From sequence record PP885688.1: a stretch of 64,000 nt of DNA. One strand, written 5' to 3'. A model generated the notes under the pieces. That model was not told where the DNA came from. It did no database searches and saw only the letters and a program-made list of their open reading frames with translations. Positions 8,005 through 28,031 of this stretch are shown piece by piece. Within the stretch, counting starts at the first letter, position 1, and the number at the start of each line of letters is the position of its first letter. The position numbers and the translations under genes are program-made.

Positions 8005-9540
8005 TTACAGTTCGTCGTCGTCGAAGTCGAAGTTCAGAGGCTTGCGTGTGGAGACAGGTGCTGCGGCGGCCTTGACCGGCTCAGGCTTCGGAGCCTCAAC
8101 CACCTTGGCGACCTCGACCACAGGAGCGGGGACGATGACCTCTTCCTTGACCGGGGACGCAATGTCTTCCAGCTCATCGTCGAAGTCCACCACCTTGCGC
8201 GTCGGAATGGGCTGCTTGATCGGCTCGGCGGCAAACCCGACTGTGGGATCAACGACCTTCTTCTCCTCGATGATGCTTACCTCGGTGGGCTCGAAGAGAC
8301 GCTCAAGGTTTGCAGCCTCAGCCTGGGCGAGCATCTCGTCTTCCAGATGCTCCAACTCACTGTCGGAGACATCGGTCAGATCCGGTGCGCTGGCCTCGGG
8401 GTCGAGCTCGATGTGGTAGCCAGCGTCGCCCTCTTCGACGACCGACTCTGCTTCCTCGCTCTCGTCTTCGGACTCCTCATCGTCGTAGTCTTCGTTCTCC
8501 TCTTCAGGATCGTGAACTACGGTGACGGGCTGAGGTGTGCCAGTCTTGACGAAGGTGCCCTTGATCTCCGGCGTCTCGGCCACATCTTCTGCAGCTCTCT
8601 CGGCCAGCTCCAGCTCAATCTCCGCCGTGGCGACGGCTTCGGTCCAGTCTTCAGCTTCGACGGCGGGAGCAGCTTCCACAGCAGCCGCCGCGTCCGCGCG
8701 ATCTGCGGCCTGTTCCGCCGCGATCTCAGCATTCGCAATGGCGCGATCTTCGTCCGTCCAGTCATCGAAGTTGGCCTGCTTGATGGTGTCTTCCACGACG
8801 GCTGTGGCGATAGGCTCCACCACACCCTTCACTTCACCAGTCTTGGAGACGTAGGGAACGCTCTCTTCCTCACCCTCATCGTCGTAGCCATTGGAGAGGA
8901 CGCCGAGCTCGGGGCCGGTGCCGCTGATTCCCAGAGCGTTCGGCAGAAGGTTTGCCCAGGACGAGTTCGCTTGTTCGCGACCCAGATCGAAGGTGGTCTT
9001 CGCCATCGTCCGCTTGCTGTCGAGGCGCTTCACTTCGATCTTGAGAGCTTCGACCAGTGCTTCAATCGAAACGTCGGTCCGGTTCATCAGGCGTGAGTAC
9101 TCGCTGGTGGCGAGGTTCTTGATGTTGGTCGCGGGCAGCTTGATCTCTGCGTCCTGTAGGACCGAGAGCGCCGCCAGGTAGTACCACGACTCGAACGCGG
9201 CCCGGAGCTCATCGGAGTCCGACTTGGCTCGCATGAGATCGCCCTGGAAACGAATGACTTTGATCTTCCACTTCTCGATCTGGTCCTGGATGTCGCCGAG
9301 CGCGTTGAGCAGCTCCTGTTCGTATTTGACGGCGATGCCTTTGTTGACTGAGTCGAGCAGCTTGATGCGCTGGATCCCGTCGATGTTGTTCTGCAGGTAG
9401 CTGAAATGGTCCTCGAACGACACGTGCTTGTCGTCGGTCTTATAGTTCAGCGAGGCCTTCAGGTTCTCTACCTGGGTGAGGACGAAGGAGTCGGCGAGCA
9501 GGCTCTCAGCCTTCAGCAGGTTCATGATGTTGTTGCTCAT
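8005..9540 (-). CDS. Helical protein with long acidic low-complexity C-terminus (N-half possibly UvsY-like recombination mediator)
   Basis: N-terminal coiled coils, E/D/A-rich tail. The UvsY resemblance is by eye only. Confidence 0.6.
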   Translation of the reverse strand: MSNNIMNLLKAESLLADSFVLTQVENLKASLNYKTDDKHVSFEDHFSYLQNNIDGIQRIKLLDSVNKGIAVKYEQELLNALGDIQDQIEKWKIKVIRFQGDLMRAKSDSDELRAAFESWYYLAALSVLQDAEIKLPATNIKNLATSEYSRLMNRTDVSIEALVEALKIEVKRLDSKRTMAKTTFDLGREQANSSWANLLPNALGISGTGPELGVLSNGYDDEGEEESVPYVSKTGEVKGVVEPIATAVVEDTIKQANFDDWTDEDRAIANAEIAAEQAADRADAAAAVEAAPAVEAEDWTEAVATAEIELELAERAAEDVAETPEIKGTFVKTGTPQPVTVVHDPEEENEDYDDEESEDESEEAESVVEEGDAGYHIELDPEASAPDLTDVSDSELEHLEDEMLAQAEAANLERLFEPTEVSIIEEKKVVDPTVGFAAEPIKQPIPTRKVVDFDDELEDIASPVKEEVIVPAPVVEVAKVVEAPKPEPVKAAAAPVSTRKPLNFDFDDDEL

Positions 9541-9899: not shown

Positions 9900-10198
9900 G
9901 AGATTACGTAGATCCCGTCTTCGGTCTCGTCGTCGCGGTCGTCCTGGAACTCGTCGTCGAACTCATCGTCGTCCTCGAAGTCCTCATCGTCCTCGTCGAA
10001 ATCGTCCTCATCTTCGTCGTCATCGTCGAAAATGGGGTCGGTGCCGTCGAAATCGCTATGTTCTTCGTCGTCTTCGTCGAAAAACTCATCGCCGTCCTCA
10101 TCGAGGCAGCTCAACGGGGCGAACGGGTGAAGTGGCGACATTGCCAGTAGGTGGAACGGTAAGTAAGGTGCTATTCCTGCGACGATCACTTCGGTCAC
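9896..10198 (-). CDS. Highly acidic (Asp/Glu-rich) small protein
   Basis: GTG at 10198 with GGAGG RBS; run of D/E/F residues. Confidence 0.6.
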   Translation of the reverse strand: MTEVIVAGIAPYLPFHLLAMSPLHPFAPLSCLDEDGDEFFDEDDEEHSDFDGTDPIFDDDDEDEDDFDEDDEDFEDDDEFDDEFQDDRDDETEDGIYVIS

Positions 10199-10214
10199 GA
10201 GAACCTCCACTCGC

Positions 10215-10250
10215 TAATACTCAAAATGGGGGCGCTTACCCAATTACTGG
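10215..10250 (-). promoter_or_regulatory. Class I bipartite promoter motif (variant)
   Basis: CCAGTAATTGGG-N16-GAGTATTA. Confidence 0.6.
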
Positions 10251-10252
10251 GC

Positions 10253-12256
10253 TCACATTCCCCAACGATTTTGTTGCTCCTCGAAATCCGCATGCAGAGA
10301 CGGCTTGACCTTCTTCGGTTTGGCACCCTCTTCGAAGACCATCTTGCGTTCGTCGTCGGCCTGGGCCTCGGCCAGCTGCGACCCACCGATGAAGGAGTTG
10401 AGGCTGACTGACTTGGTGTGGGCCTTCATCAGGGACAGGAACTCGGAGTCCTTCGCTGACTGCTCCATACCGGAGGCCATGTCGAAGATCTCGCGGTCGT
10501 CGAGCAGACCGGCGGAGTGACTCTCGCCGAGGATCTTCTCGAACAGCCCCTTTTTGCCCTTCAGCGTCTCGATCGCGTACTCATCGACCGTCCCGCGTCC
10601 GACCAGGCAGTGCAACGTGCAGGCGGAGTGCGGGCTGGCCATACGGACCATGCGGCCCACCAGCTGCAGCAGATCGCCCCAGCTCCAGCACATGTCCAGC
10701 TTGATCAGGTGGGCCGCCTGCTGAAGGTTCACGCCCTCGGTGGCCGCCGCGTTGATGAAGATGAGATCGTGGTCGCCATCGGGATCCTGGAAGAGGCGCT
10801 TGGCCTGGCTGCGCTGATCCTCGTTCTCCGCGCCGGTGATGCGCAGGAACTTCCGGTCCGTGAAGTGTCCCTCTTTGGTGAGCCACTCCAGCCGGTCGAT
10901 CCACGACTTCGACTTGGTGTAGACGATGACCTTCTCACCACGGAAGTCGCCGTCGAGCATGTCGAGCAGGGCCTCCTCTTTCGGTGAGAGGGTGCGGGTG
11001 AGGAACTTCTTCTTGTCGTTCACATCCAACAGCGCCGGGTGGTTGGCGACCAGCTGGTAGACCGAGAGCATCGTCATCTCGTTCTCTGGATCACGGTCGC
11101 GCGTGATGATCTCGCCATGCAACTTGATCACCGAAGGCGGCAGTTGGTACTTGCCGGACGGAATGTCCTCAAGCAGTAGTCGAGCCTGCTCCGGGTCGAG
11201 GTCGATCGGATGGATGATGGTGGTGAGGCGGGGTAGCTTCTCTTTGACCTGGCGCTGGGACCTGCCTAGAAAGAAGGGACGCATACCGGCCTTGAAGGTG
11301 GCGACGTTGCGATAGCCCTCAAGGACCTTCTTATGCTTGCCCTTGCCGATGAAGACGTTGCGGAAGATACAGAACCGCTCTTCAAACTCTGCCGGGACAC
11401 CGAACGGCTTGATCCCGATGGCCGAGGCGATCGAATACATCTCGTCGAGGCCGTTCTTGATGATCGTGGCCGTCAGAGCGTGGACGCGGGCGCAGGGCCT
11501 GGCGAGGATCTGTACCATGTTGCGGGTTGCGCCGCCGAGCGTCTTGAACTTCTGGCACTCATCGAGCACCATCAGTACGTCCTGGCCGTAGGGCTTCAGG
11601 ATCTTGATGAACTCCTTCACCTCGGAGGCAACGCGCTCACGCCCGTTGACCGTGGGATTACCATCAGCGTCGAACTTGCCCTCGACCTTCTTGCGTGTCC
11701 CCACCATCGAGGAGTACTTGCAAATCAGAACGTCGTGGTCATCCTTGGCGAGGAAGTCGGAGAGCTGGGCGAAGCGAGCTTCATACGACTTCAGCTTGTT
11801 GTACTTGTCTTTCATCACCGTGGTGCGCAGCGTAGAGAAGCGCTGATATTCGTCAGCCCACTGGCCGGTCGTCGACTTCGTCGTGAAGACGATGATCTTG
11901 AGGCGGGGCAGGCGATCTGTGAGCCAGCAGTGACTGATGATGGACTCGAGAGTCTTGCCTAGGCCTACTGAGTCCCCGTTGATGAAGCGGGGCATGCGGG
12001 ACATCGTCTGCGCCATCTGCAACTGGTACTGCTTGGGCTCCAGGACGACGCCGGTGTCGCGCTCACGGATGATGTCCCAGAGCGTGGTGCGAAGGCGTGT
12101 AGGCCACTTGAATGGGACTGGTCCATCGTCTGGGATCTTCCAGTTGCGAAGCTTGAACAGCTTCACCATGAGATCGTCCGGCAGACCTAGCTCCCGGGTG
12201 AAGGGAGTTATCAGCGGACACAGCTCTTCAACGTCGTCGTAAGTAGAAAGGGTCAC
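10253..12256 (-). CDS. SNF2-family (SF2) helicase/ATPase
   Basis: GDSVGLGKT, LDECQKFK, LTAT, EKVIVYT, TEGVNLQQA, QLVGRMVR. Confidence 0.9.
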   Translation of the reverse strand: MTLSTYDDVEELCPLITPFTRELGLPDDLMVKLFKLRNWKIPDDGPVPFKWPTRLRTTLWDIIRERDTGVVLEPKQYQLQMAQTMSRMPRFINGDSVGLGKTLESIISHCWLTDRLPRLKIIVFTTKSTTGQWADEYQRFSTLRTTVMKDKYNKLKSYEARFAQLSDFLAKDDHDVLICKYSSMVGTRKKVEGKFDADGNPTVNGRERVASEVKEFIKILKPYGQDVLMVLDECQKFKTLGGATRNMVQILARPCARVHALTATIIKNGLDEMYSIASAIGIKPFGVPAEFEERFCIFRNVFIGKGKHKKVLEGYRNVATFKAGMRPFFLGRSQRQVKEKLPRLTTIIHPIDLDPEQARLLLEDIPSGKYQLPPSVIKLHGEIITRDRDPENEMTMLSVYQLVANHPALLDVNDKKKFLTRTLSPKEEALLDMLDGDFRGEKVIVYTKSKSWIDRLEWLTKEGHFTDRKFLRITGAENEDQRSQAKRLFQDPDGDHDLIFINAAATEGVNLQQAAHLIKLDMCWSWGDLLQLVGRMVRMASPHSACTLHCLVGRGTVDEYAIETLKGKKGLFEKILGESHSAGLLDDREIFDMASGMEQSAKDSEFLSLMKAHTKSVSLNSFIGGSQLAEAQADDERKMVFEEGAKPKKVKPSLHADFEEQQNRWGM

Positions 12257-12262
12257 TTGGGC

Positions 12263-12298
12263 TAATACCCAAGCGACCCTCGTTTACCTGATTATTGA
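12263..12298 (-). promoter_or_regulatory. Class I promoter motif, leaderless geometry
   Basis: TCAATAATCAGG-N16-GGGTATTA, 6 nt before the GTG. Confidence 0.8.
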
Positions 12299-12302
12299 AG
12301 CT

Positions 12303-12584
12303 TTAGGAGCGACGAAATACAAAAGCTATCTCTTCGTTGGTCTGCTTGACCTGCCTAAGCTCCGAAGTGGTTGTGGATGCCGGATACGATACTCCTACGT
12401 GTGCGCAGGGATAGCTTGTAACAAGAACCCAGCCCTCCCGGGAAAGGGAATCGAACACAGAAGGAAGATGACCGTCACCGCCGTTGTTCTGAAGCTCGTC
12501 GGGGTATTCGTCGATGCCGTCACCGATCAGACGGAACGAGCCGTCCCTACGTGAGTAAAATCCTATTGCATGCTTTGCAGCCAT
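12303..12584 (-). CDS. Hypothetical protein (93 aa)
   Basis: Start MAAKHA at 12584. Confidence 0.6.
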   Translation of the reverse strand: MAAKHAIGFYSRRDGSFRLIGDGIDEYPDELQNNGGDGHLPSVFDSLSREGWVLVTSYPCAHVGVSYPASTTTSELRQVKQTNEEIAFVFRRS

Positions 12585-20320: not shown

Positions 20321-20888
20321 CGACTTCAGTGCCCTCGGCCTCGCAGCCTGGCTTGTGGGAACGCATGTAGACAAAGGGTGCGCCGGTGCAGGTGTCGAAC
20401 CGCTCAGCACAACTGAGAGCGCCCTTGATGCGTTCAAGGATCGGCTGATCCGGCGTAGCGAACAGGTAGCCTAGTGCGAAGTCTGCACCAGAACCCGATG
20501 CATAGTAGTCGTCCTTGGCCTCGTAGAGCAGGCCCATGCTATTCCCGCGAAAGATGCGACCCTTGTACGCGACTACTAGACCCAACGCTTCATCTCCGTC
20601 GTTGACAGCCCTCTCAAGGCTCTTCGAGCGGAGACAACGACGGATGGCGACTGGCAGGTGAGAAGAGACGAACTCATCGTCGGGCATGCCCTCAGGGTGC
20701 TCGATGTCGCCGAGGCCGTAGGTGAGGGCATTCATATAGATCATCATGCCGCTCATCCCAATGAGCAGGTCGCCACTCCGCAGGATCTTCGGCTTCTCCA
20801 CGACGGAGGGCCTGGTGCCGGTGGTGAAGCGGCTGTCGGCACCGATCACGACTCCCCATTTGTCTTTGATAGCGGCGATGGTGGTCAC
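20313..20888 (-). CDS. Ntn-hydrolase, HslV/proteasome-beta-like peptidase
   Basis: N-terminal MTTIAA..GVVIGADSR.T, KI, GMSG, ASGSG..FALG. Confidence 0.8.
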   Translation of the reverse strand: MTTIAAIKDKWGVVIGADSRFTTGTRPSVVEKPKILRSGDLLIGMSGMMIYMNALTYGLGDIEHPEGMPDDEFVSSHLPVAIRRCLRSKSLERAVNDGDEALGLVVAYKGRIFRGNSMGLLYEAKDDYYASGSGADFALGYLFATPDQPILERIKGALSCAERFDTCTGAPFVYMRSHKPGCEAEGTEVDG

Positions 20889-21460
20889 GAGGTGGCCTCG
20901 GTGGTGCAGCAGGGTTCGTGCAGCATGTTGCTCTTCATCCCGCAGGCCTTATGCTCACCGTATTCCGGTGTGTGACAGAGGCACGTGCAGGTGGGTGCGG
21001 TCTTCGGGATAAGAGCGAGGATCTCATTACCGCGAACCTCGTAGAGGTGGGCTACGTCGTAGCAGTTGGTCTCGATGACGGTGCGAGCGAGGCGTGCGGC
21101 GCTGAAGCATACCTCGGCGGCGTCCTTGACTCCGGCGTTGTAGTTCGCGACGCGGCGCTCTGCTTCTACCTGGTTCGTCTTGGCACGATGGGCTGCGATC
21201 TCACTCAGAGCTGCACGGATTGCGATGACGTCGAACTGGCTCAGGATGTGTTCGTGGACCCCGGCTGCCATACGTGCGAGCCGTTGGATCTGATCGGCGG
21301 ACGTCGTAGCCCGCATCTTCTCCTCGTACTCTTCTCGCCGCTTCTTCGTTTCCTCTTCGTAGCCAGGTGTGGGAGCGCCGCTCAGAAAGCGGGCTAACCC
21401 TTCGGGCGTCGGGTCTCCCGCGACGTTGATCTCGTGACGTGCGTACTTTGGAATGCGCAT
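20885..21460 (-). CDS. Hypothetical protein (191 aa)
   Basis: TGATG coupling to the ligase C-half. Confidence 0.65.
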   Translation of the reverse strand: MRIPKYARHEINVAGDPTPEGLARFLSGAPTPGYEEETKKRREEYEEKMRATTSADQIQRLARMAAGVHEHILSQFDVIAIRAALSEIAAHRAKTNQVEAERRVANYNAGVKDAAEVCFSAARLARTVIETNCYDVAHLYEVRGNEILALIPKTAPTCTCLCHTPEYGEHKACGMKSNMLHEPCCTTEATS

Positions 21461-22413
21461 CAGTCCGCCCACTCCACATCAAGGCCACCACCGGCGGCCT
21501 TGAGTCCGTACTTCACAAATTGCTCATTGATCCAGTCAGTGTCGAAGTTGGGGATGTTGAGTTCCTTCGCCTTCTTCAACTTCGTCGCGCCGGGCTCGGT
21601 GCCGACGAGGAGGTGTGTTACCTTCTTCGTCACGCCACTCTTCGAGACCGCGCCCAACTTCACGAGCTGGTTGGTGATGTACTCACGGCTGCCGATCTCG
21701 TAGAACTCACCGGTGATGCAGAAGGCAACGCCCGCCAGAGGGGAACCCTCGACGACCGTGGGCTGCTCAATCGGAGTCGGGCGTACGCCTGCAGAGTAGA
21801 GACGCTGACAGATCAGCGAACCCTCGGCGTCGAGCGCGAACTTGTTCAGTTCTGCCCGCTTGTGGAAGCCGATTCCCTCGATCTCCTTGATCTCCTGCAC
21901 CAGTCCAGGCAGATACAGCTTTGCCGGAAGTGTGAGCATGCCCTCAGAGGTGAGCTTGTGTTCCTTGGCGATCACCTTACCGAGAGTGATGCCGATCATC
22001 GGAATACCAAGGGCACCGATCCAGCGATCCCACCCGGCAGTCTTTGCACGCTCAGCGGTCTCGATCATGTTGAGGATCGCGGCGGCGGCGAGACCACGCT
22101 TACGCATGACAGCAGAGAACTTCTCCTCACCGTGTTTCTCCAGGGCAGCCGCGCATTCGTTGAGGAACTCAAAGAGGTCCGCGATGTTGGTGATGTAGCC
22201 AGCCTTCGCGAGCGTCGCAGCCATCTCAGGCCCAAGACCTTCGATCTCCAGCAGCTTGCGGTCGGCGATGTAGGTGAGCATGTCGGCAACGCGGCCAGCA
22301 CAGAGAGTGTTCTCGCACCAGTGAGTGATGATCTGAGACTTGGGCTCGGTGTATTCGACGATGACGGAGCCGCAGTCCGGGCAGAGTGTGGGGGCGTTGA
22401 TAGGGGTTGTCAT
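21460..22413 (-). CDS. ligA: NAD-dependent DNA ligase, C-terminal half (Zn finger, HhH, BRCT)
   Basis: CPDCGS...WCENTLC zinc finger; IEGLGPE, ALGIPMIG and IEGIG HhH motifs; FCITG...SGVTKKVTHLLVG.EPGATKLKKAKELNI BRCT. Confidence 0.9.
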   Translation of the reverse strand: MTTPINAPTLCPDCGSVIVEYTEPKSQIITHWCENTLCAGRVADMLTYIADRKLLEIEGLGPEMAATLAKAGYITNIADLFEFLNECAAALEKHGEEKFSAVMRKRGLAAAAILNMIETAERAKTAGWDRWIGALGIPMIGITLGKVIAKEHKLTSEGMLTLPAKLYLPGLVQEIKEIEGIGFHKRAELNKFALDAEGSLICQRLYSAGVRPTPIEQPTVVEGSPLAGVAFCITGEFYEIGSREYITNQLVKLGAVSKSGVTKKVTHLLVGTEPGATKLKKAKELNIPNFDTDWINEQFVKYGLKAAGGGLDVEWAD

Positions 22414-22415
22414 GG

Positions 22416-22679
22416 TTAGGATATTTCCGTGAAGGAGGGTCCACCCGCGTAGAAGGAGGTGATCTTGACGATGGAGTGCGAAGATAGGGCGACCATGCTG
22501 AAAATCTGATCCGGAGTCTCTTTGACGGTGTGGCGTTCCCCATTTTTCTGCGCCAGGTACGTACCCTTCTCGAATTGCTGAACGGTTGAAATATCGTCAG
22601 CAACAACGTAGACAGGGCTAATCTTGCCGGGTGGGACTATTGCGCTACCTGTGGGTGTCAACTTCAGGATGTTCATCAA
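22416..22679 (-). CDS. FlbD/SwrD-like small protein
   Basis: ILKLT...VYVVADDISTVQQ..T.L..KNGERHTVKETPDQI pattern. Confidence 0.55.
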   Translation of the reverse strand: MMNILKLTPTGSAIVPPGKISPVYVVADDISTVQQFEKGTYLAQKNGERHTVKETPDQIFSMVALSSHSIVKITSFYAGGPSFTEIS

Positions 22680-22710
22680 ATCTCCTCGTCGGGCAAAGCC
22701 AGACTTTCGC

Positions 22711-22746
22711 TAATACCCTCGGAGGAGGTCGTTCCCTGAATATCGA
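22711..22746 (-). promoter_or_regulatory. Class I promoter motif
   Basis: TCGATATTCAGG-N16-GGGTATTA; would drive the FlbD-like gene and the ligase C-half. Confidence 0.8.
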
Positions 22747-22758
22747 GGCAAGTTTTTT

Positions 22759-23370
22759 CTAGTAGTAGTTCTTCTGCCGCAGCTCGGATAGAGCGTTCAG
22801 GTCGAACCGCTGCGCCGGGCTCCCCAGGTTGACCGGCAGCTGGAGATAGTCGACGATCTGGCGGATGTAGTCGAACCCGAGCGTCAGCTCCACAGTCTGC
22901 CCACGTAGATTGCCCTGGATGATTCCGTCCATGACGCTGGCGGCCTCATGGCTGTCTTGGACGCGGCCCTGCTGATGGTAGGCGAAGCTTTTGTCACGCG
23001 GGTGGTAGAAGGTGAGGTTGTTGTAACTATCCCAGTACTCATGAACCGTGTTGCGAAATGCCTGGGTGCCACCCTGCTTCGAGTACACGATACCAAGCAG
23101 CAGCGGGCTGTCCGTGATGACGTAATCAGTAGCGTGACGCAGACGATGCAACCGTCTGTTTTGCTTGGCGAGGATATAGAGCTGATCGGCCAGGATGTTG
23201 GAGCGATCCTCGTAGACCATGTCTTCCGCGTATTCCTGCACGTATTTGACGCGGAGGCCTGCACGCTTCATGAAGTAGCTGAGGCCGAGGGCTGTGCACG
23301 TCTTCCCGGTGTTCGGCCCGCCGATCAGATTGATGATCGTCGCGCCCTTCTGCTGGTCTTGCTGGCTCAC
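22759..23370 (-). CDS. NadR/AAA_28-type P-loop nucleotide kinase
   Basis: INLIGGPNTGKT, VQEYA, VITDSPLL, YHQQGR; GTG start with GGAG RBS. Confidence 0.8.
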   Translation of the reverse strand: MSQQDQQKGATIINLIGGPNTGKTCTALGLSYFMKRAGLRVKYVQEYAEDMVYEDRSNILADQLYILAKQNRRLHRLRHATDYVITDSPLLLGIVYSKQGGTQAFRNTVHEYWDSYNNLTFYHPRDKSFAYHQQGRVQDSHEAASVMDGIIQGNLRGQTVELTLGFDYIRQIVDYLQLPVNLGSPAQRFDLNALSELRQKNYY

Positions 23371-23860
23371 GGGTGTCTCCTGTGGGTTCGTTGGTTTTGA
23401 AGTAGGCCACGATGGCGTGGACAATGGGGAGGGTTAGGCCGACGCTGAACTCGGTCTTGAAGAGGTGGTCCATCAGGTGCGCCATGTCCGAGTCGTCGTC
23501 AAGGATGGCGAAGCTGGTCACGTCTGGGTGCATGTCGATCCAGTCTTGGATTTCAACCCCACGCGGGACACCAAAGGTGGTCGCGCCGGTACGATCGACG
23601 AGCCGGTTACGGTCGATGCCGTTCTCTTCGAGCAGGTCAGCGCACTCCGGGACCGTGAGGCCTGTGCGCCAGCAGCTGCTCAGCACGATCAGGAGGTCAG
23701 GGATCGTTTCGAGGAGGACGCGAAGATTGTTGGTTGCGATCGGGCACCAGGTGCGCCAGCCCTTGTCTGATTCCGCATCGTCCTTATGCAGCCAGCGATG
23801 GTAGCGTGCTGACTGCTCGGTCATCATGACGCCGTCGATGTCGAGGAAGAGGATCTTCAC
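23126..23860 (-). CDS. HAD phosphatase, Swiss-Army-Knife RNA-repair-like type
   Basis: KILFLDIDGV, IVLSSCWR, RGVEIQDWI, FAILDDDSDM, GLT. The frame runs about 245 nt into the kinase gene. Confidence 0.85.
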   Translation of the reverse strand: MKILFLDIDGVMMTEQSARYHRWLHKDDAESDKGWRTWCPIATNNLRVLLETIPDLLIVLSSCWRTGLTVPECADLLEENGIDRNRLVDRTGATTFGVPRGVEIQDWIDMHPDVTSFAILDDDSDMAHLMDHLFKTEFSVGLTLPIVHAIVAYFKTNEPTGDTREPARPAEGRDDHQSDRRAEHREDVHSPRPQLLHEACRPPRQIRAGIRGRHGLRGSLQHPGRSALYPRQAKQTVASSASRY

Positions 23861-24258
23861 GGGACATCCTTCTGTGCATCGACCAGAGCACGGTGGGAGG
23901 CGATGAGGAATCCAACTGGGTCAACACCAGCTCCGATCTGTCCGTTGGTCTTCTCGGTCAGGTACGCGGCGACGCGAGCCTCATCTCCCTCGTAGGTGAA
24001 GTCGGGGGACTTCTCGCGGATAGCGCTGCGGGTCTTGACCCACTCCTCGTTGAGGAAGGTCTCCTCAGTGGGGGACGCCACGTTGACCACTGTCCGGGCA
24101 AGCCGGATGACCGGTGCCCACTCTGGGTGGAGAACGCCCTGGATGGTATGGCGACGTCCGTTGATGTGGCGCTCGTCGATGTCGAGAGAGAAGAGAGGCA
24201 ATCCCTTCTCCTTCGCGGTAGCCTTATCGTCCTTGTCGTAACGGGGCTGGGAGATCAT
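23857..24258 (-). CDS. Hypothetical protein (133 aa)
   Basis: Coupled on both sides. Confidence 0.65.
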   Translation of the reverse strand: MISQPRYDKDDKATAKEKGLPLFSLDIDERHINGRRHTIQGVLHPEWAPVIRLARTVVNVASPTEETFLNEEWVKTRSAIREKSPDFTYEGDEARVAAYLTEKTNGQIGAGVDPVGFLIASHRALVDAQKDVP

Positions 24259-24845
24259 GCCTGGCCCGCCGCTTCCGCCGCAGCGGCCTCTGCCGACTCC
24301 GCAGCCTTCTTCACCGCACGTGCAGCCTTCTCGGCGTCAATGATTGCGTAGTACTCGGAGATCCGCAGCTCGGTGCAGCCAGTGGGGACGTCGGTGCCGC
24401 CGGGGGTGCAGAGAATGGTCTTGTCCCCGTAAACGCCGAAGGTTGCCCAGTACATGCTGTTGCCTTCCCACTTGGTGAAGGTCTGGCCGAGAGCCCGTTC
24501 GAGCATGCCGGTGAAGCCTAAGCTGTCAGGAGCCGAAGGGATCTCGTCGATCATCTTCGCGATGGCCTTACCCGCCTTCGTACGCTTGGCGGGAACGTAG
24601 TAGTCGCCGTCGAAGCGCCAGCCCTCAGGGACCTTACCTTCGGGGAAGCCGCAACCGACAAAGTAGGCGCTACCGTCGCCGCGAATCAGGAGGCGATCTG
24701 CACCTTGCTCTTTTTCAAAGGCTTCTAAGATTCCGACTCGGATTTCGGTCTTGGCGGTGGCCTCGTTGATGACGGCAAGTGCCGGTGCATCGGGTCCAAC
24801 CAGATAGTAGATGTGATCGCTCATTCGGTATTGCTCCTCGGCCAC
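24255..24845 (-). CDS. Hypothetical protein (~190 aa; start may be 24824)
   Basis: Class I motif upstream. Confidence 0.7.
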   Translation of the reverse strand: MAEEQYRMSDHIYYLVGPDAPALAVINEATAKTEIRVGILEAFEKEQGADRLLIRGDGSAYFVGCGFPEGKVPEGWRFDGDYYVPAKRTKAGKAIAKMIDEIPSAPDSLGFTGMLERALGQTFTKWEGNSMYWATFGVYGDKTILCTPGGTDVPTGCTELRISEYYAIIDAEKAARAVKKAAESAEAAAAEAAGQA

Positions 24846-24862
24846 ATAAGCGGCTCAAGGGG

Positions 24863-24898
24863 TAATACCGTTCGGGGTGGCCTGACCCTGATTATTGG
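24863..24898 (-). promoter_or_regulatory. Class I promoter motif
   Basis: CCAATAATCAGG-N16-CGGTATTA. Confidence 0.75.
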
Positions 24899-24914
24899 GT
24901 CAGCTTTTTATTGC

Positions 24915-25145
24915 TCACCCGGCCACGTCGACCAGGTTCAGCGAGGGCGAAGGACCGATCCCCTTCGCCTGGCGGGTCGCCTCATCATTCTGCCAATAGA
25001 AGTAATGGTGACTGATCTCCAGCACCTCTGTGAAGACGGTTGCCTTCTCGGTCTGGAACGCGATCTTCTCCCCGACGCGTGGCAGGACCTCGACCACGAT
25101 CGTGGCTAGTATGTCGTCCGCTTTATTAGCTATTGTCAGGAGCAT
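24915..25145 (-). CDS. Hypothetical protein (76 aa)
   Basis: GAGGAGG RBS before MLLTIAN. Confidence 0.6.
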   Translation of the reverse strand: MLLTIANKADDILATIVVEVLPRVGEKIAFQTEKATVFTEVLEISHHYFYWQNDEATRQAKGIGPSPSLNLVDVAG

Positions 25146-25374
25146 CGGAATCCTCCTCATCGTCGACATGCGGACACTCGTCCACGTTGAATGTCTTCGT
25201 GCAGGTCGTGCAGTGACCGGCGATGTCACAGTTGCGGTACGGCGTGATCAGCTCGGTGCGGCATATAGGACAGAGGAACCCTTTGTCTCTTCCGTCTACG
25301 TCAGCAGTCTTGCCGGTGCAGTCACCGCAGTGGAAGGGCTCTGGGAGAGGGTTGGGCGTGATGATTTCGTGCAT
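25126..25374 (-). CDS. Cys-rich putative zinc-binding protein
   Basis: CGDC, CPIC, C..GHC..C motifs; TAATG coupling. Confidence 0.65.
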   Translation of the reverse strand: MHEIITPNPLPEPFHCGDCTGKTADVDGRDKGFLCPICRTELITPYRNCDIAGHCTTCTKTFNVDECPHVDDEEDSDAPDNS

Positions 25375-25631
25375 TAGCGACCCCACAATTCGCGGTTCTT
25401 ACCGTACAACCGCTTGTAATAGCGCCGACGCGCGTAGGCCTGGCGCAGGGCGGACTCAACAGCATTCCGCCGAGGATCCTCCGCCTTCAGAGATCCGAGC
25501 GCCGTCCGAAATTGTGTCACCCGATAGTTCAGTTGATGGCGAAGTGACAGGCCGATTGAATAGGCATAGGTGTTGGGCCAGGGTATGTGCGTGATGATCC
25601 ACGTGGGTAGGTACTCCAGACTATTCTCCAT
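25374..25631 (-). CDS. Hypothetical basic protein (85 aa)
   Basis: Overlaps the stop of the ligase N-half. Confidence 0.6.
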   Translation of the reverse strand: MENSLEYLPTWIITHIPWPNTYAYSIGLSLRHQLNYRVTQFRTALGSLKAEDPRRNAVESALRQAYARRRYYKRLYGKNRELWGR

Positions 25632-26763
25632 CGAGCACCGCTGTGATCTGCGGGATCACATCCCCGCTGCGCACGACCTCGACACGGCTTCCGATCTCGA
25701 GTTTCATTGCACGGATCCACGAGAGGTTGTTCAGCGTCACACGCTCGATGCTGGCACCGGCGAGAATCACCGGCTCGATCACACCGACCGGCGTCAGCTT
25801 GCCCTGGCGGCCTACCTGCCAGATGACGTCGAGCAGGACACTCTCGCTCTTCGCGTTCTGTGTCTTGAACGCGACCTGGAAGTTGGCGAACTTCGAACCT
25901 AGGCCTAGCTCGCGACGGCGGGCACAGCTGTCGATCTTGATGACGATACCGTCGCGACCGATCTCCTCATCCTTGTTGTCGAGCAGCTTGACGAACTTAG
26001 CCAGCTGAGCCAGCAGCTCCGTCGCATTGGCGACTGCGACATCGTCCGGTGCGTCGAAGCCAAACAGAATCAAGTCACTAAGGCGAGTGGAGGCGGAGTC
26101 ACCTGATTCGATGGATGAGTCGAGTAGGGGAGCGATGACCTCCCACGGCTTGAACTGAATGTCGCGCTTCTTGACCTCTTGGAGATCCTTCAGCTTCATG
26201 GTTCCGGCGACAAGGTTGCGCGTCGACATGTACGGCTTGCCTCCTGCCGCCACGATCTCCGCGTTCAGCTTGGCAAGGGTTGACTGCTTCATCACCAGCT
26301 CGCCACGGATCTCGAGGTCGATGCCGTAGCCGATTTCGTTGGGGATGGCGAAGATCACCTGGACTTGGGGGAGAATCGACTCACCGGCGTCGCCGTCACC
26401 GCGTGTGACTGCCTTGACCAGTTTGCCCTTCTCATAAGTGAGTGAGCAGCTGACGCCGTCATACTTCGAGCTGAGAGTCACAGTCTGACCTACGTGCCTC
26501 TTGTACCAGGTAAGGAGGTCGTCCACGCTGTAGACGTTCTCGATCGAGCGCATCGGATGAGCGTGGGGGATACGGCCACCGGCGTCGGTGCCTACGGTCG
26601 TGAGTACGGTGGCTCCGGAGGCTTGGGATGGGTTCAGCTTGACCAGTGTCGCGAGTTCAATCTCAGCCGCGTCATACTCGGCGTCGGACATGATGGGTTG
26701 ACCGGCGTAATAACTTTCTCTTGCAGCTGTCAGCTTTTGATTCAGACTTTCCACTGTTTGCAT
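25621..26763 (-). CDS. ligA: NAD-dependent DNA ligase, N-terminal half (Ia, adenylation, OB)
   Basis: YYAGQPIMSDAEYD, SSKYDG (active-site Lys), TRGDG, EIRGE, TRNLVAG, DGIVIK, WQVGRQGKLTPV, VRSGDVIP, then a stop. Confidence 0.92.
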   Translation of the reverse strand: MQTVESLNQKLTAARESYYAGQPIMSDAEYDAAEIELATLVKLNPSQASGATVLTTVGTDAGGRIPHAHPMRSIENVYSVDDLLTWYKRHVGQTVTLSSKYDGVSCSLTYEKGKLVKAVTRGDGDAGESILPQVQVIFAIPNEIGYGIDLEIRGELVMKQSTLAKLNAEIVAAGGKPYMSTRNLVAGTMKLKDLQEVKKRDIQFKPWEVIAPLLDSSIESGDSASTRLSDLILFGFDAPDDVAVANATELLAQLAKFVKLLDNKDEEIGRDGIVIKIDSCARRRELGLGSKFANFQVAFKTQNAKSESVLLDVIWQVGRQGKLTPVGVIEPVILAGASIERVTLNNLSWIRAMKLEIGSRVEVVRSGDVIPQITAVLDGE

Positions 26764-27139
26764 GGGACTCCTCGGTTGCGTTGCCATTGATGTGATTCCA
26801 GATCGCTGCTATCTGGGGCGTGAGGCGGACCCTCTTAGCATCCTGATGCGACTGCCACGCGGCGTTGAAGAGGTTGTGTTCGACGTGCATGATGGCAGCT
26901 ACGCTCAGCCCACCGATTTCAGCTTGTCGTGATGTGCCGCCACGGAAGTGGCTAGTAGACACAAGCACGTTGCCCACAGTGCACTCGTATCGCATCACAT
27001 GGAGACCTATTTGCCTGGGCTGCCATACGAGCTCGCCCGCCCGGGTCTTGTTGGTTAGTGCAATTAGGATCTGTTCCTCTGGCGTGTACGGGTTTTCTTT
27101 AGCTGAGGCGGCGTCCTTATTACGTCTCCAAAATGGCAT
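26672..27139 (-). CDS. Hypothetical protein (155 aa)
   Basis: Class I motif upstream; the tail overlaps the ligase start. Confidence 0.55.
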   Translation of the reverse strand: MPFWRRNKDAASAKENPYTPEEQILIALTNKTRAGELVWQPRQIGLHVMRYECTVGNVLVSTSHFRGGTSRQAEIGGLSVAAIMHVEHNLFNAAWQSHQDAKRVRLTPQIAAIWNHINGNATEESHANSGKSESKADSCKRKLLRRSTHHVRRRV

Positions 27140-27182
27140 GTCTGGGTCCCTTTCACGGCGAAAAAAGCCCGCCGTCTTTGAC

Positions 27183-27218
27183 TAATACCCATTCGCGGGG
27201 CCGGAAAGGGATTATCGC
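27183..27218 (-). promoter_or_regulatory. Class I promoter motif
   Basis: GCGATAATCCCT-N16-GGGTATTA. Confidence 0.7.
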
Positions 27219-27219
27219 G

Positions 27220-27609
27220 TCAGCTTATTTTCTGACTCTCGTGAGCGGGATCCTCAGCAGCTCTGCCCGTGCCCTGGCATGCAGCGCAACCCATAAACTG
27301 CTTGTAGATGCCCATGAAGTTCTTCTCGCCCATCGGGATCTCTCCCTTACCCTCACACAGGGTGCAGATGAGCAGCAGGCGGCGTAGTTTCCGGTCGTAG
27401 ATCCCACGCGATGTAGCGTGGCCGACCACCAGCATCGCTTCGTTGTACTGCTGCAGCTTCAGAATGAGCTGAGACCACTTCATGCTGGTCCAAGCGTGAT
27501 GCTCCGGTGGGAAGCATTCCTTCGCCAGCAGCCAGTACGCTTTGTGGATGACGTCCTGATCGTCGCCAGGGCGGACGCCAAGTGTGTCATAGTGCGTGTG
27601 CGTGCTCAC
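27220..27609 (-). CDS. DnaJ-like protein (J-domain lacking HPD, plus DnaJ-type CxxCxGxG repeats)
   Basis: THYDTLGV...IHKAYWLLAKECFPP; YNEA..V.G....RGIYD; CTLCEGKG and CAACQGTG. Confidence 0.7.
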   Translation of the reverse strand: MSTHTHYDTLGVRPGDDQDVIHKAYWLLAKECFPPEHHAWTSMKWSQLILKLQQYNEAMLVVGHATSRGIYDRKLRRLLLICTLCEGKGEIPMGEKNFMGIYKQFMGCAACQGTGRAAEDPAHESQKIS

Positions 27610-28031
27610 AGCCTCAGGCCTCCCTCGGCTTCAATAATGGCGGCGATCTCTGTGTTGGTGGGAAGGTGCCGCGCGTCGGAGTCGAACACGTAGCCCTGGA
27701 GGGAGAGCTCGTTACCGAGCGTGGTCCCGTCTTCGCGGACCGAGATAGCTTTGGCGGACCAGCGGGAGAACTTCGGACCGTCGATCTTGACGTCAACGTT
27801 GATCGACCCCAGGATGCGGAACTGTAGGCCGTAGCCGCGACCGCGCATCACCATGGCGCGATGCGCCGGACCGGGCTTCGCCGTGTCGACGATGGTCCCG
27901 ACGGGTAGCTGGGCTTCGAGCGATGCCTTGAAGCGGGCTGCCAGCTCATTCTTGAGCTCACGGGCGGCGCTGTAGTGGATGTGCAGACTGTTCATTAGCT
28001 GCAGGACAGTTGACTCTGTGGCTAGGCTCAT
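27606..28031 (-). CDS. Hypothetical protein (141 aa)
   Basis: Coupled ORF. Confidence 0.65.
   Translation of the reverse strand: MSLATESTVLQLMNSLHIHYSAARELKNELAARFKASLEAQLPVGTIVDTAKPGPAHRAMVMRGRGYGLQFRILGSINVDVKIDGPKFSRWSAKAISVREDGTTLGNELSLQGYVFDSDARHLPTNTEIAAIIEAEGGLRL

Follow-up and report, generated by a model that had tools for sequence, protein, structure and literature searches.

A NAD-dependent DNA ligase encoded as two dispersed halves in Tunturiibacter phage Tunturi_5

The Tunturiibacter phage Tunturi_5 is a jumbo myovirus of 308.7 kb from Arctic soil that infects an acidobacterial host, and its record is a complete isolate genome. A window of 64,000 nt, which is 100% identical to the corresponding part of record PP885688.1 (window coordinate = record coordinate - 62,000), was analyzed here. 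The window encodes an NAD-dependent DNA ligase (LigA) as two separate genes, gp116 and gp108, whose products together comprise one complete LigA and are complementary at a domain linker. Most likely the products form a non-covalent two-subunit enzyme of the type found in phages T5 and PR1. This kind of enzyme is already known and it is only the layout of the genes, dispersed instead of adjacent, that differs in Tunturi_5. In the clade of huge soil phages to which Tunturi_5 belongs, the two genes are without exception separate, with 3.2-9.9 kb between them, and flank a conserved gene cassette. The new elements are this conserved dispersed layout and the series of natural intermediates seen among relatives, namely fused halves, halves 77 bp apart, and halves with one gene between them. 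The features under study are listed in Table 1.

GenBank labels gp116 and gp108 alike as 'NAD-dependent DNA ligase'. All six LigA domains are present across the two products, catalytic and structural motifs included, and the Tunturi_5 genome possesses only one copy of each half. The N-half aligned with positions 2-385 of the NCBIfam LigA model NF005932 (E 7.5e-82; score 275.9) and the C-half with positions 394-661 (E 4.6e-39; score 134.5). Each score is lower than the curated cut-off of 369 which is surpassed by their sum. Neither product therefore exceeds the equivalog cut-off that identifies a single-polypeptide LigA, as the protein is specified by two open reading frames (ORFs) that are 3,207 nt apart with eight ORFs on the same strand between them. 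In alignments with E. coli LigA (PDB 2owo), the N-half corresponds to residues 25-391 and the C-half commences at residue 402. As the alignments with NF005932 and with E. coli LigA both end and resume at this position, the break is located in the linker between the OB fold and the Zn finger. The first-pass annotation of the window had described two intact ligase genes 3.2 kb apart that break at the OB/Zn-finger boundary, that are jointly complete, and that flank eight ORFs of the same orientation, all of which was borne out.

The ORF for the N-half is open as far as an ATG at 26787 (25621..26787, 388 aa). However, the ATG at 26763 is the probable start codon because a GAGGAG Shine-Dalgarno sequence is positioned 5 nt upstream and a homolog that is 88% identical (P0001) starts at this site; the first-pass annotation had given the same coordinate. 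The start of gp116 in GenBank (26691) removes conserved residues of domain Ia (Y25 and Y26).

The proteins most similar to the N-half, at 45-88% identity, are without exception N-only and ~370-410 aa in length, and many are encoded on contigs of 180-440 kb; full-length proteins enter the list of homologs only at ~45% identity. The C-half has a matching set of free-standing homologs of 296-320 aa, and a metagenome scan with this half yielded five loci only. Both halves were present on nine of nine related contigs that included sufficient flanking sequence. When split pairs were sought in related phages, as the first-pass annotation had proposed, the same split layout was found to recur in independently assembled contigs. 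Both halves have the same orientation and enclose HAD_SAK_2 and AAA_28 genes in loci L023 and L026, in which the gap from N- to C-half is 3.5 kb, in JGI contig 3300067032 (9,040 bp; gap of 3.7 kb), and in loci L029 (8.3 kb) and L025 (9.9 kb). An all-against-all comparison revealed five cassette genes that are common to the clade with dispersed halves, and which have no homologs in the compared loci of L004 and L033, in which the ligase is fused, nor of L028. The latter three loci are outside the core clade, as are L037, in which the halves are adjacent and separated by 77 bp, and L036 which, like L028, has one unrelated gene between the halves.

The phylogenetic relationships of the ligases were assessed with a tree of 94 rows for the N-half region. 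Tunturi_5 is placed in a clade of 29 rows with a support value of 99 in the Shimodaira-Hasegawa-like approximate likelihood ratio test. Of the rows in this clade, 27 are split and two are unlabelled owing to length. The sister group of this clade contains a mixture of fused and split genes, and the T5-type clade is separate. The Tunturi-type split likely arose independently of the T5-type split, as the N-half sequence is 28% identical to the T5-type protein compared to 46% for the nearest fused gene; joining the two types of split was not rejected in an approximately unbiased test (difference in log-likelihood of 12.7, p 0.22). The stop codons of the free-standing N-halves are real and map to the same linker, as 48 of 50 N-only proteins end 7-14 residues past the proline of the GDVIP motif. 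Parsimony indicated ~10 changes between fused and split states on the tree. These transitions, along with the clustering of the termini within a span of a few residues, show that natural fission has occurred repeatedly at the OB/Zn-finger linker. A fused phage LigA would have broken at this linker and the new gap then would have gained genes. Overall, the relatives document growth of the new intergenic gap of a split gene from 77 bp to ~10 kb with both halves apparently remaining functional.

Other arrangements were noted among the relatives. Further layouts occur in more distant huge-phage contigs recovered by profile search, including L006, a 308-kb IMG/VR contig in which the C-half (8626-9453, minus strand) is upstream of the N-half (10001-11104, plus strand) in divergent orientation. 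In the basal relative L036 (9385-12953), a 263-aa ORF separates the N-half from a downstream C-half that lacks the Zn finger and begins within the HhH domain; a GIY-YIG/NUMOD3 homing endonuclease gene is located immediately upstream on the other strand. The sole ORF between the halves in L028 (11307-11966; phrog_4652) shows a weak match to chain D of PDB 36pp, 'SUSP1 Vipr protein' (E 1.6e-6). A 438-kb contig, L038, which also is outside the core clade, was considered as an example of an overlapping split but was ruled out: it bears a fused ligase gene (10001-12456) with a frameshift inside the HhH domain, which makes the gene a pseudogene or else points to an error of assembly. The jumbo phages RSL2 and BONAISHI similarly were dismissed as cases of separated halves as the ligase is fused in both.

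The N-half is under clear purifying selection, with a ratio of non-synonymous to synonymous substitution rates (dN/dS) of 0.117 at a dS of 0.64 in comparison with L030. The C-half gave proportions of non-synonymous differences of 0.26-0.40 compared with 0.55-0.78 for synonymous differences, but only saturated pairs were compared. The conservation of individual residues is the decisive evidence for selection. Residues Y25-Y26, D35 and D39, which represent the NMN-binding aromatic and acidic residues of domain Ia in the N-half and require the start codon at 26763, align with the Ia region of E. coli LigA and do not vary among 31 free-standing N-halves. The K108-Y-D-G, RGE, DG-V-K and fK sequences (including motifs III, IV, and V) also are invariant in these 31 proteins, and PF01653 is recorded on the homologs. 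The WQvGR-G and RSGdvIP sequences of the OB fold are conserved, with OB residues invariant in the same 31 N-halves, and aligned up to residue 391 of the E. coli protein, with PF03120 recorded on the homologs. No variation was seen among 29 free-standing C-halves at residues C11, C14, C33, and C38, in the HhH loops, or in the BRCT core. The AlphaFold model of the C-half has a predicted local distance difference test (pLDDT) score of 90.5 and a Zn finger-HhH-BRCT organization. The model matches the Zn finger-HhH region of 2owo (root-mean-square deviation of 3.5 Å over 211 columns), BRCT domains, and chain B of PDB 9hu3. The first-pass annotation had regarded relaxed selection on one half as grounds for abandoning its interpretation. 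The dN/dS value argues against relaxation in the N-half; for the C-half, for which only saturated pairs were available, the residues are conserved.

The sequence GGTATTA occurs 12 times in the window compared to an expected 1.15 copies, with all copies on the minus strand and co-oriented with the genes. The copies are part of a conserved bipartite intergenic element that comprises an A-tract, a GATAAT box, ~20 nt, and tgGGTATTA. This bipartite motif probably represents a phage promoter class. Some copies are located within hairpins, but RNAalifold gave no consensus structure for the motif as a conserved hairpin. A copy of the motif precedes each ligase half, with one ORF in between. Thus, the halves appear to belong to separate transcription units that are driven by the same promoter class, and may be co-regulated. 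The two class I promoters that had been annotated previously between the halves correspond to genuine copies of the motif, although the designation requires amendment: no sigma-70 promoters were found on the coding strand in a generic scan and the motif is phage-specific.

Covalent rejoining of the halves, whether by a split intein, a trans-splicing intron, ribosomal bypass, or excision of the 3.2-kb insert from the DNA, was evaluated at the junction. In L004, a 455-kb IMG/VR contig that is the closest fused relative and whose ligase is 46 and 50% identical to the N- and C-halves, respectively, the gene runs continuously across the stop/start point of Tunturi_5, and zero residues are gained or lost in the latter. 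The N-half ends ~9 residues past GDVIP, the C-half starts ~10 residues before the first Zn-binding cysteine, and both termini extend only ~2-5 residues past the aligned LigA sequence. As the junction is without extra sequence, there is no room for the halves of a split intein, and both an intein and a split intein were ruled out. No Rfam match, whether to an intron or to a ribozyme, was evident at E≤1 in 20500-27800 and the gap is full of conserved protein genes, which argues against a group I or group II intron. No repeats that flank the gap were found, and searches of the eight intervening ORFs against PHROGs and NCBIfam returned no match to homing endonuclease or recombinase families. Removal of the gap by site-specific recombination therefore was discounted. 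Moreover, the gap in relatives ranges from 77 bp to 9.9 kb and is filled with ordinary conserved genes. Overall, covalent joining is extremely improbable, and the earlier view that an intein, an intron, and a homing endonuclease are all absent was upheld. The possibility that the split is an artefact of assembly is even more remote and barely merits consideration: the layout and cassette recur in independently assembled contigs from different samples and Tunturi_5 is a complete isolate genome. Misassembly, which the first-pass annotation had recognized as a potential flaw, thus is excluded. It is also very improbable that the two ORFs are remains of a ligase gene that was disrupted by insertion and that the phage instead uses the LigA of the host. 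Acidobacterial hosts, like bacteria generally, are expected to possess their own LigA which would allow for such decay. Nevertheless, the low dN/dS value of the N-half, the existence of >30 intact free-standing copies of each half at 45-88% identity in which the catalytic residues are all invariant, and the near-uniform termination of N-only proteins past GDVIP effectively refute this explanation.

Formation of a non-covalent two-subunit LigA is the explanation that best accommodates these observations. By analogy with the T5/PR1-type enzymes, the halves are predicted to associate physically and to possess ligase activity. Subunits A and B would associate non-covalently, probably on the nicked duplex, and would seal nicks in the manner of the T5-like heterodimer, with subunit B (Zn finger-HhH-BRCT) supplying a DNA-clamping surface. 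The non-covalent assembly in trans that was proposed originally is supported, at the level of sequence, by purifying selection on the N-half (dN/dS 0.12), by retention of motifs in both halves, and by their co-occurrence on related contigs. A number of points weigh against this interpretation. The termini possess no added dimerisation element so that the subunits must owe their affinity to the native contacts between domains or to DNA. Each half is in its own putative transcription unit. The dN/dS values for the C-half are unreliable as synonymous sites are saturated. Interaction between the halves and their activity are deduced from sequence comparisons. Furthermore, the halves do not co-evolve tightly: in addition to the separate putative units, the N- and C-halves on JGI contig 3300067032 (P0002 and P0121) are discordant, being 65 and 87% identical to those of Tunturi_5, respectively, while the N-half of L030 is 88% identical to that of Tunturi_5. 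This pattern indicates that the halves have been exchanged by recombination as separate modules.

Such reshuffling, the placement of the halves behind separate promoter-like motifs, the missing Zn finger in the C-half of the basal L036, and the location of the halves on opposite strands in L006 would be compatible with separate functions for the two products. The N-half alone then would be a minimal adenylating or ligating enzyme, and the C-half an independent DNA-binding protein or BRCT scaffold. This scenario is unlikely. LigA-type enzymes that are cut off after the OB fold undergo self-adenylation but do not ligate (PMC1684257). Furthermore, the elements by which the C-terminus of canonical LigA contacts DNA are all invariant, the halves co-occur on nine of nine contigs, and a solved heterodimer (PDB 9hu3) has the same break. 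A more elaborate version is somewhat less likely again: the free C-half would be a stand-alone nick-binding or scaffold subunit with its own promoter and interchangeable catalytic partners, and the cassette, comprising the HAD phosphatase-like gene, the P-loop kinase gene, and three others, would be linked to it functionally, forming a module for the processing of nicks. If so, the mosaic JGI contig would reflect swapping of partners. The two-subunit ligase with native interdomain or DNA-mediated contacts remains the favored interpretation.

Table 1. Ligase genes, intervening ORFs, and promoter-like motifs in the 64,000-nt window of Tunturi_5 (window coordinates).
Feature	Coordinates	Strand	Description
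LigA N-half (subunit-A equivalent; gp116)	25621..26763	-	Domain Ia, nucleotidyltransferase with K108-x-D-G, OB fold; 380 aa from ATG 26763
LigA C-half (subunit-B equivalent; gp108)	21460..22413	-	C4 Zn finger (C11, C14, C33, C38), HhH domain, BRCT; 317 aa
Intervening ORF 1	25374..25631	-	85 aa, no assigned function; 11-nt overlap with N-half stop; same-place homologs in L023, L026
Intervening ORF 2	25126..25386	-	86 aa, Cys-rich, zinc-ribbon-like; 90% identical in L030
Intervening ORF 3	24915..25229	-	104-aa ORF; GenBank gp113 shorter; 88% identical in L030
Intervening ORF 4	24255..24845	-	196 aa; conserved cassette member, also in L023, L025
Intervening ORF 5	23857..24258	-	133 aa; conserved cassette member, also in L023, L025, L026, L029
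Intervening ORF 6	23126..23860	-	HAD_SAK_2-type phosphatase-like, phrog_1818 (E 8.5e-24); unannotated in GenBank
Intervening ORF 7	22759..23424	-	AAA_28 P-loop kinase; GenBank gp110 'thymidylate kinase', start 23370
Intervening ORF 8	22416..22679	-	87 aa, phrog_8458; stop 2 nt before C-half ATG
Promoter-like motif	27183..27231	-	Upstream of 155-aa ORF (26672..27139), then N-half
Promoter-like motif in gap	24863..24911	-	Upstream of 196-aa ORF
Promoter-like motif in gap	22711..22759	-	Upstream of 87-aa ORF directly preceding C-half
GGTATTA copies	753, 12263, 13710, 22711, 24863, 27183, 31139, 31665, 41210, 44261, 54681, 60870	-	

The genes of the cassette resemble ordinary cargo for nucleotide metabolism that came to reside between the halves. 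The AAA_28 protein is a member of a large family and its predicted fold (pLDDT 90.9) aligned with thymidylate kinases with template modeling scores of 0.62-0.67 and with the kinase domain of NadR with a score of 0.61. A 'heal-and-seal' role, in which the kinase and HAD genes of the cassette would serve the ligase as a partner with polynucleotide kinase-phosphatase activity, is unsupported: the kinase fold is thymidylate kinase-like, and sequence searches were uninformative. A link with NAD salvage through a NadR-like kinase also was set aside, as the similarity is weak and non-specific. Separately, a gene with CTP_transf_like and NUDIX domains (NadM/NatV-like and possibly involved in NAD salvage) was observed at L026:20939-21152 and L027:17026-17239 and is situated ~5 kb downstream of the split ligase in a relative. 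The cassette produced zero hits with PADLOC when examined for a role in defence or anti-defence.

The HAD_SAK_2 ORF, which has homologs in L025, L026, and L029, specifies 244 aa, which is longer than its counterparts of 160-174 aa in relatives, and overlaps the AAA_28 gene by ~245 nt. The overlong ORF may be due to a lost stop codon or to a sequence error. The short interval between the stop codon of ORF 8 and the ATG of the C-half suggests that the two genes are translationally coupled. Upstream of the ligase, the unannotated 155-aa ORF overlaps the start of the N-half by ~92 nt and has a 50%-identical homolog in L030; GenBank instead has a 56-aa ORF on the other strand (gp117) at this site.

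With the Tunturi_5 genes, two-subunit LigA is represented by a second lineage that is probably independent of the first. These genes reveal no new enzymatic principle. In practical terms, the two halves can be paired in annotation and the start of gp116 corrected, and the proteins may be of use in the design of split ligases and provide a comparison for the solved T5/PR1-type heterodimer.

The first-pass annotation stated that no two-subunit LigA had been described, which was mistaken. The split LigA of phage T5 has been described since 2005 and the ligA and ligB subunits are named in PMC3632103. A tblastn search with the N-half retrieved 1,233 phage records and, among the matches listed, many T5-like entries are annotated as 'subunit A'. 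PHROGs possesses separate N-only (phrog_3359) and C-only (phrog_3498) families. Moreover, PDB entries 9hu3 and 9i5i, entitled 'PR1 phage heterodimeric DNA ligase in complex with 21-mer nicked DNA', contain a chain A of 339 residues and a 'DNA ligase subunit B' of 248 residues, both with strong homology to the subunits of the T5 type (E 3e-106 and 4e-79). The Tunturi_5 enzyme shares with the T5/PR1 type the partition between domain Ia, nucleotidyltransferase, and OB fold on one side and Zn finger, HhH, and BRCT on the other, without an intein. The position of the break agrees within 1-2 residues, corresponding to 381/388 on phrog_3869 in Salmonella phage Shivani and 382/387 in Tunturi_5, and non-covalent assembly on the nick is the presumed mechanism for both. 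In contrast, the T5-type genes are adjacent with a gap of ~80-200 bp (~200 bp in Shivani), whereas the Tunturi_5 genes are separated by 3.2 kb that harbors eight ORFs and two promoter-like motifs. The T5-type proteins show only ~28% (N-half) and 22-24% (C-half) identity to those of Tunturi_5, compared to 46-50% for the nearest fused relatives. The Tunturi_5 halves correspondingly fit the full-length family phrog_3869 (7e-92 and 7e-36) better than phrog_3359 and phrog_3498 (2.4e-59 and 6.6e-20). The single-chain LigA proteins of E. coli (2owo) and of the fused loci L004 and L033 share all domains and motifs with the Tunturi_5 enzyme, which differs in consisting of two polypeptides.

The ligase also resembles phage 'genes in pieces' in which two ORFs each encode part of an essential enzyme of replication, as with nrdA/mobE of Aeh1, genes 43A/43B of Aeromonas phages 25 and 44RR, and the gp39/gp60 topoisomerase of T4. 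The products of such genes must reassemble, and the cases that have been studied remain functional (PMC2988022). A homing endonuclease gene (GIY-YIG) is adjacent to a ligase piece only in the distant relative L036. Thus, whereas the splits in these other systems usually are associated with a homing endonuclease gene or with a short untranslated spacer, the gap in the Tunturi_5 ligase is occupied by a conserved multi-gene cassette.

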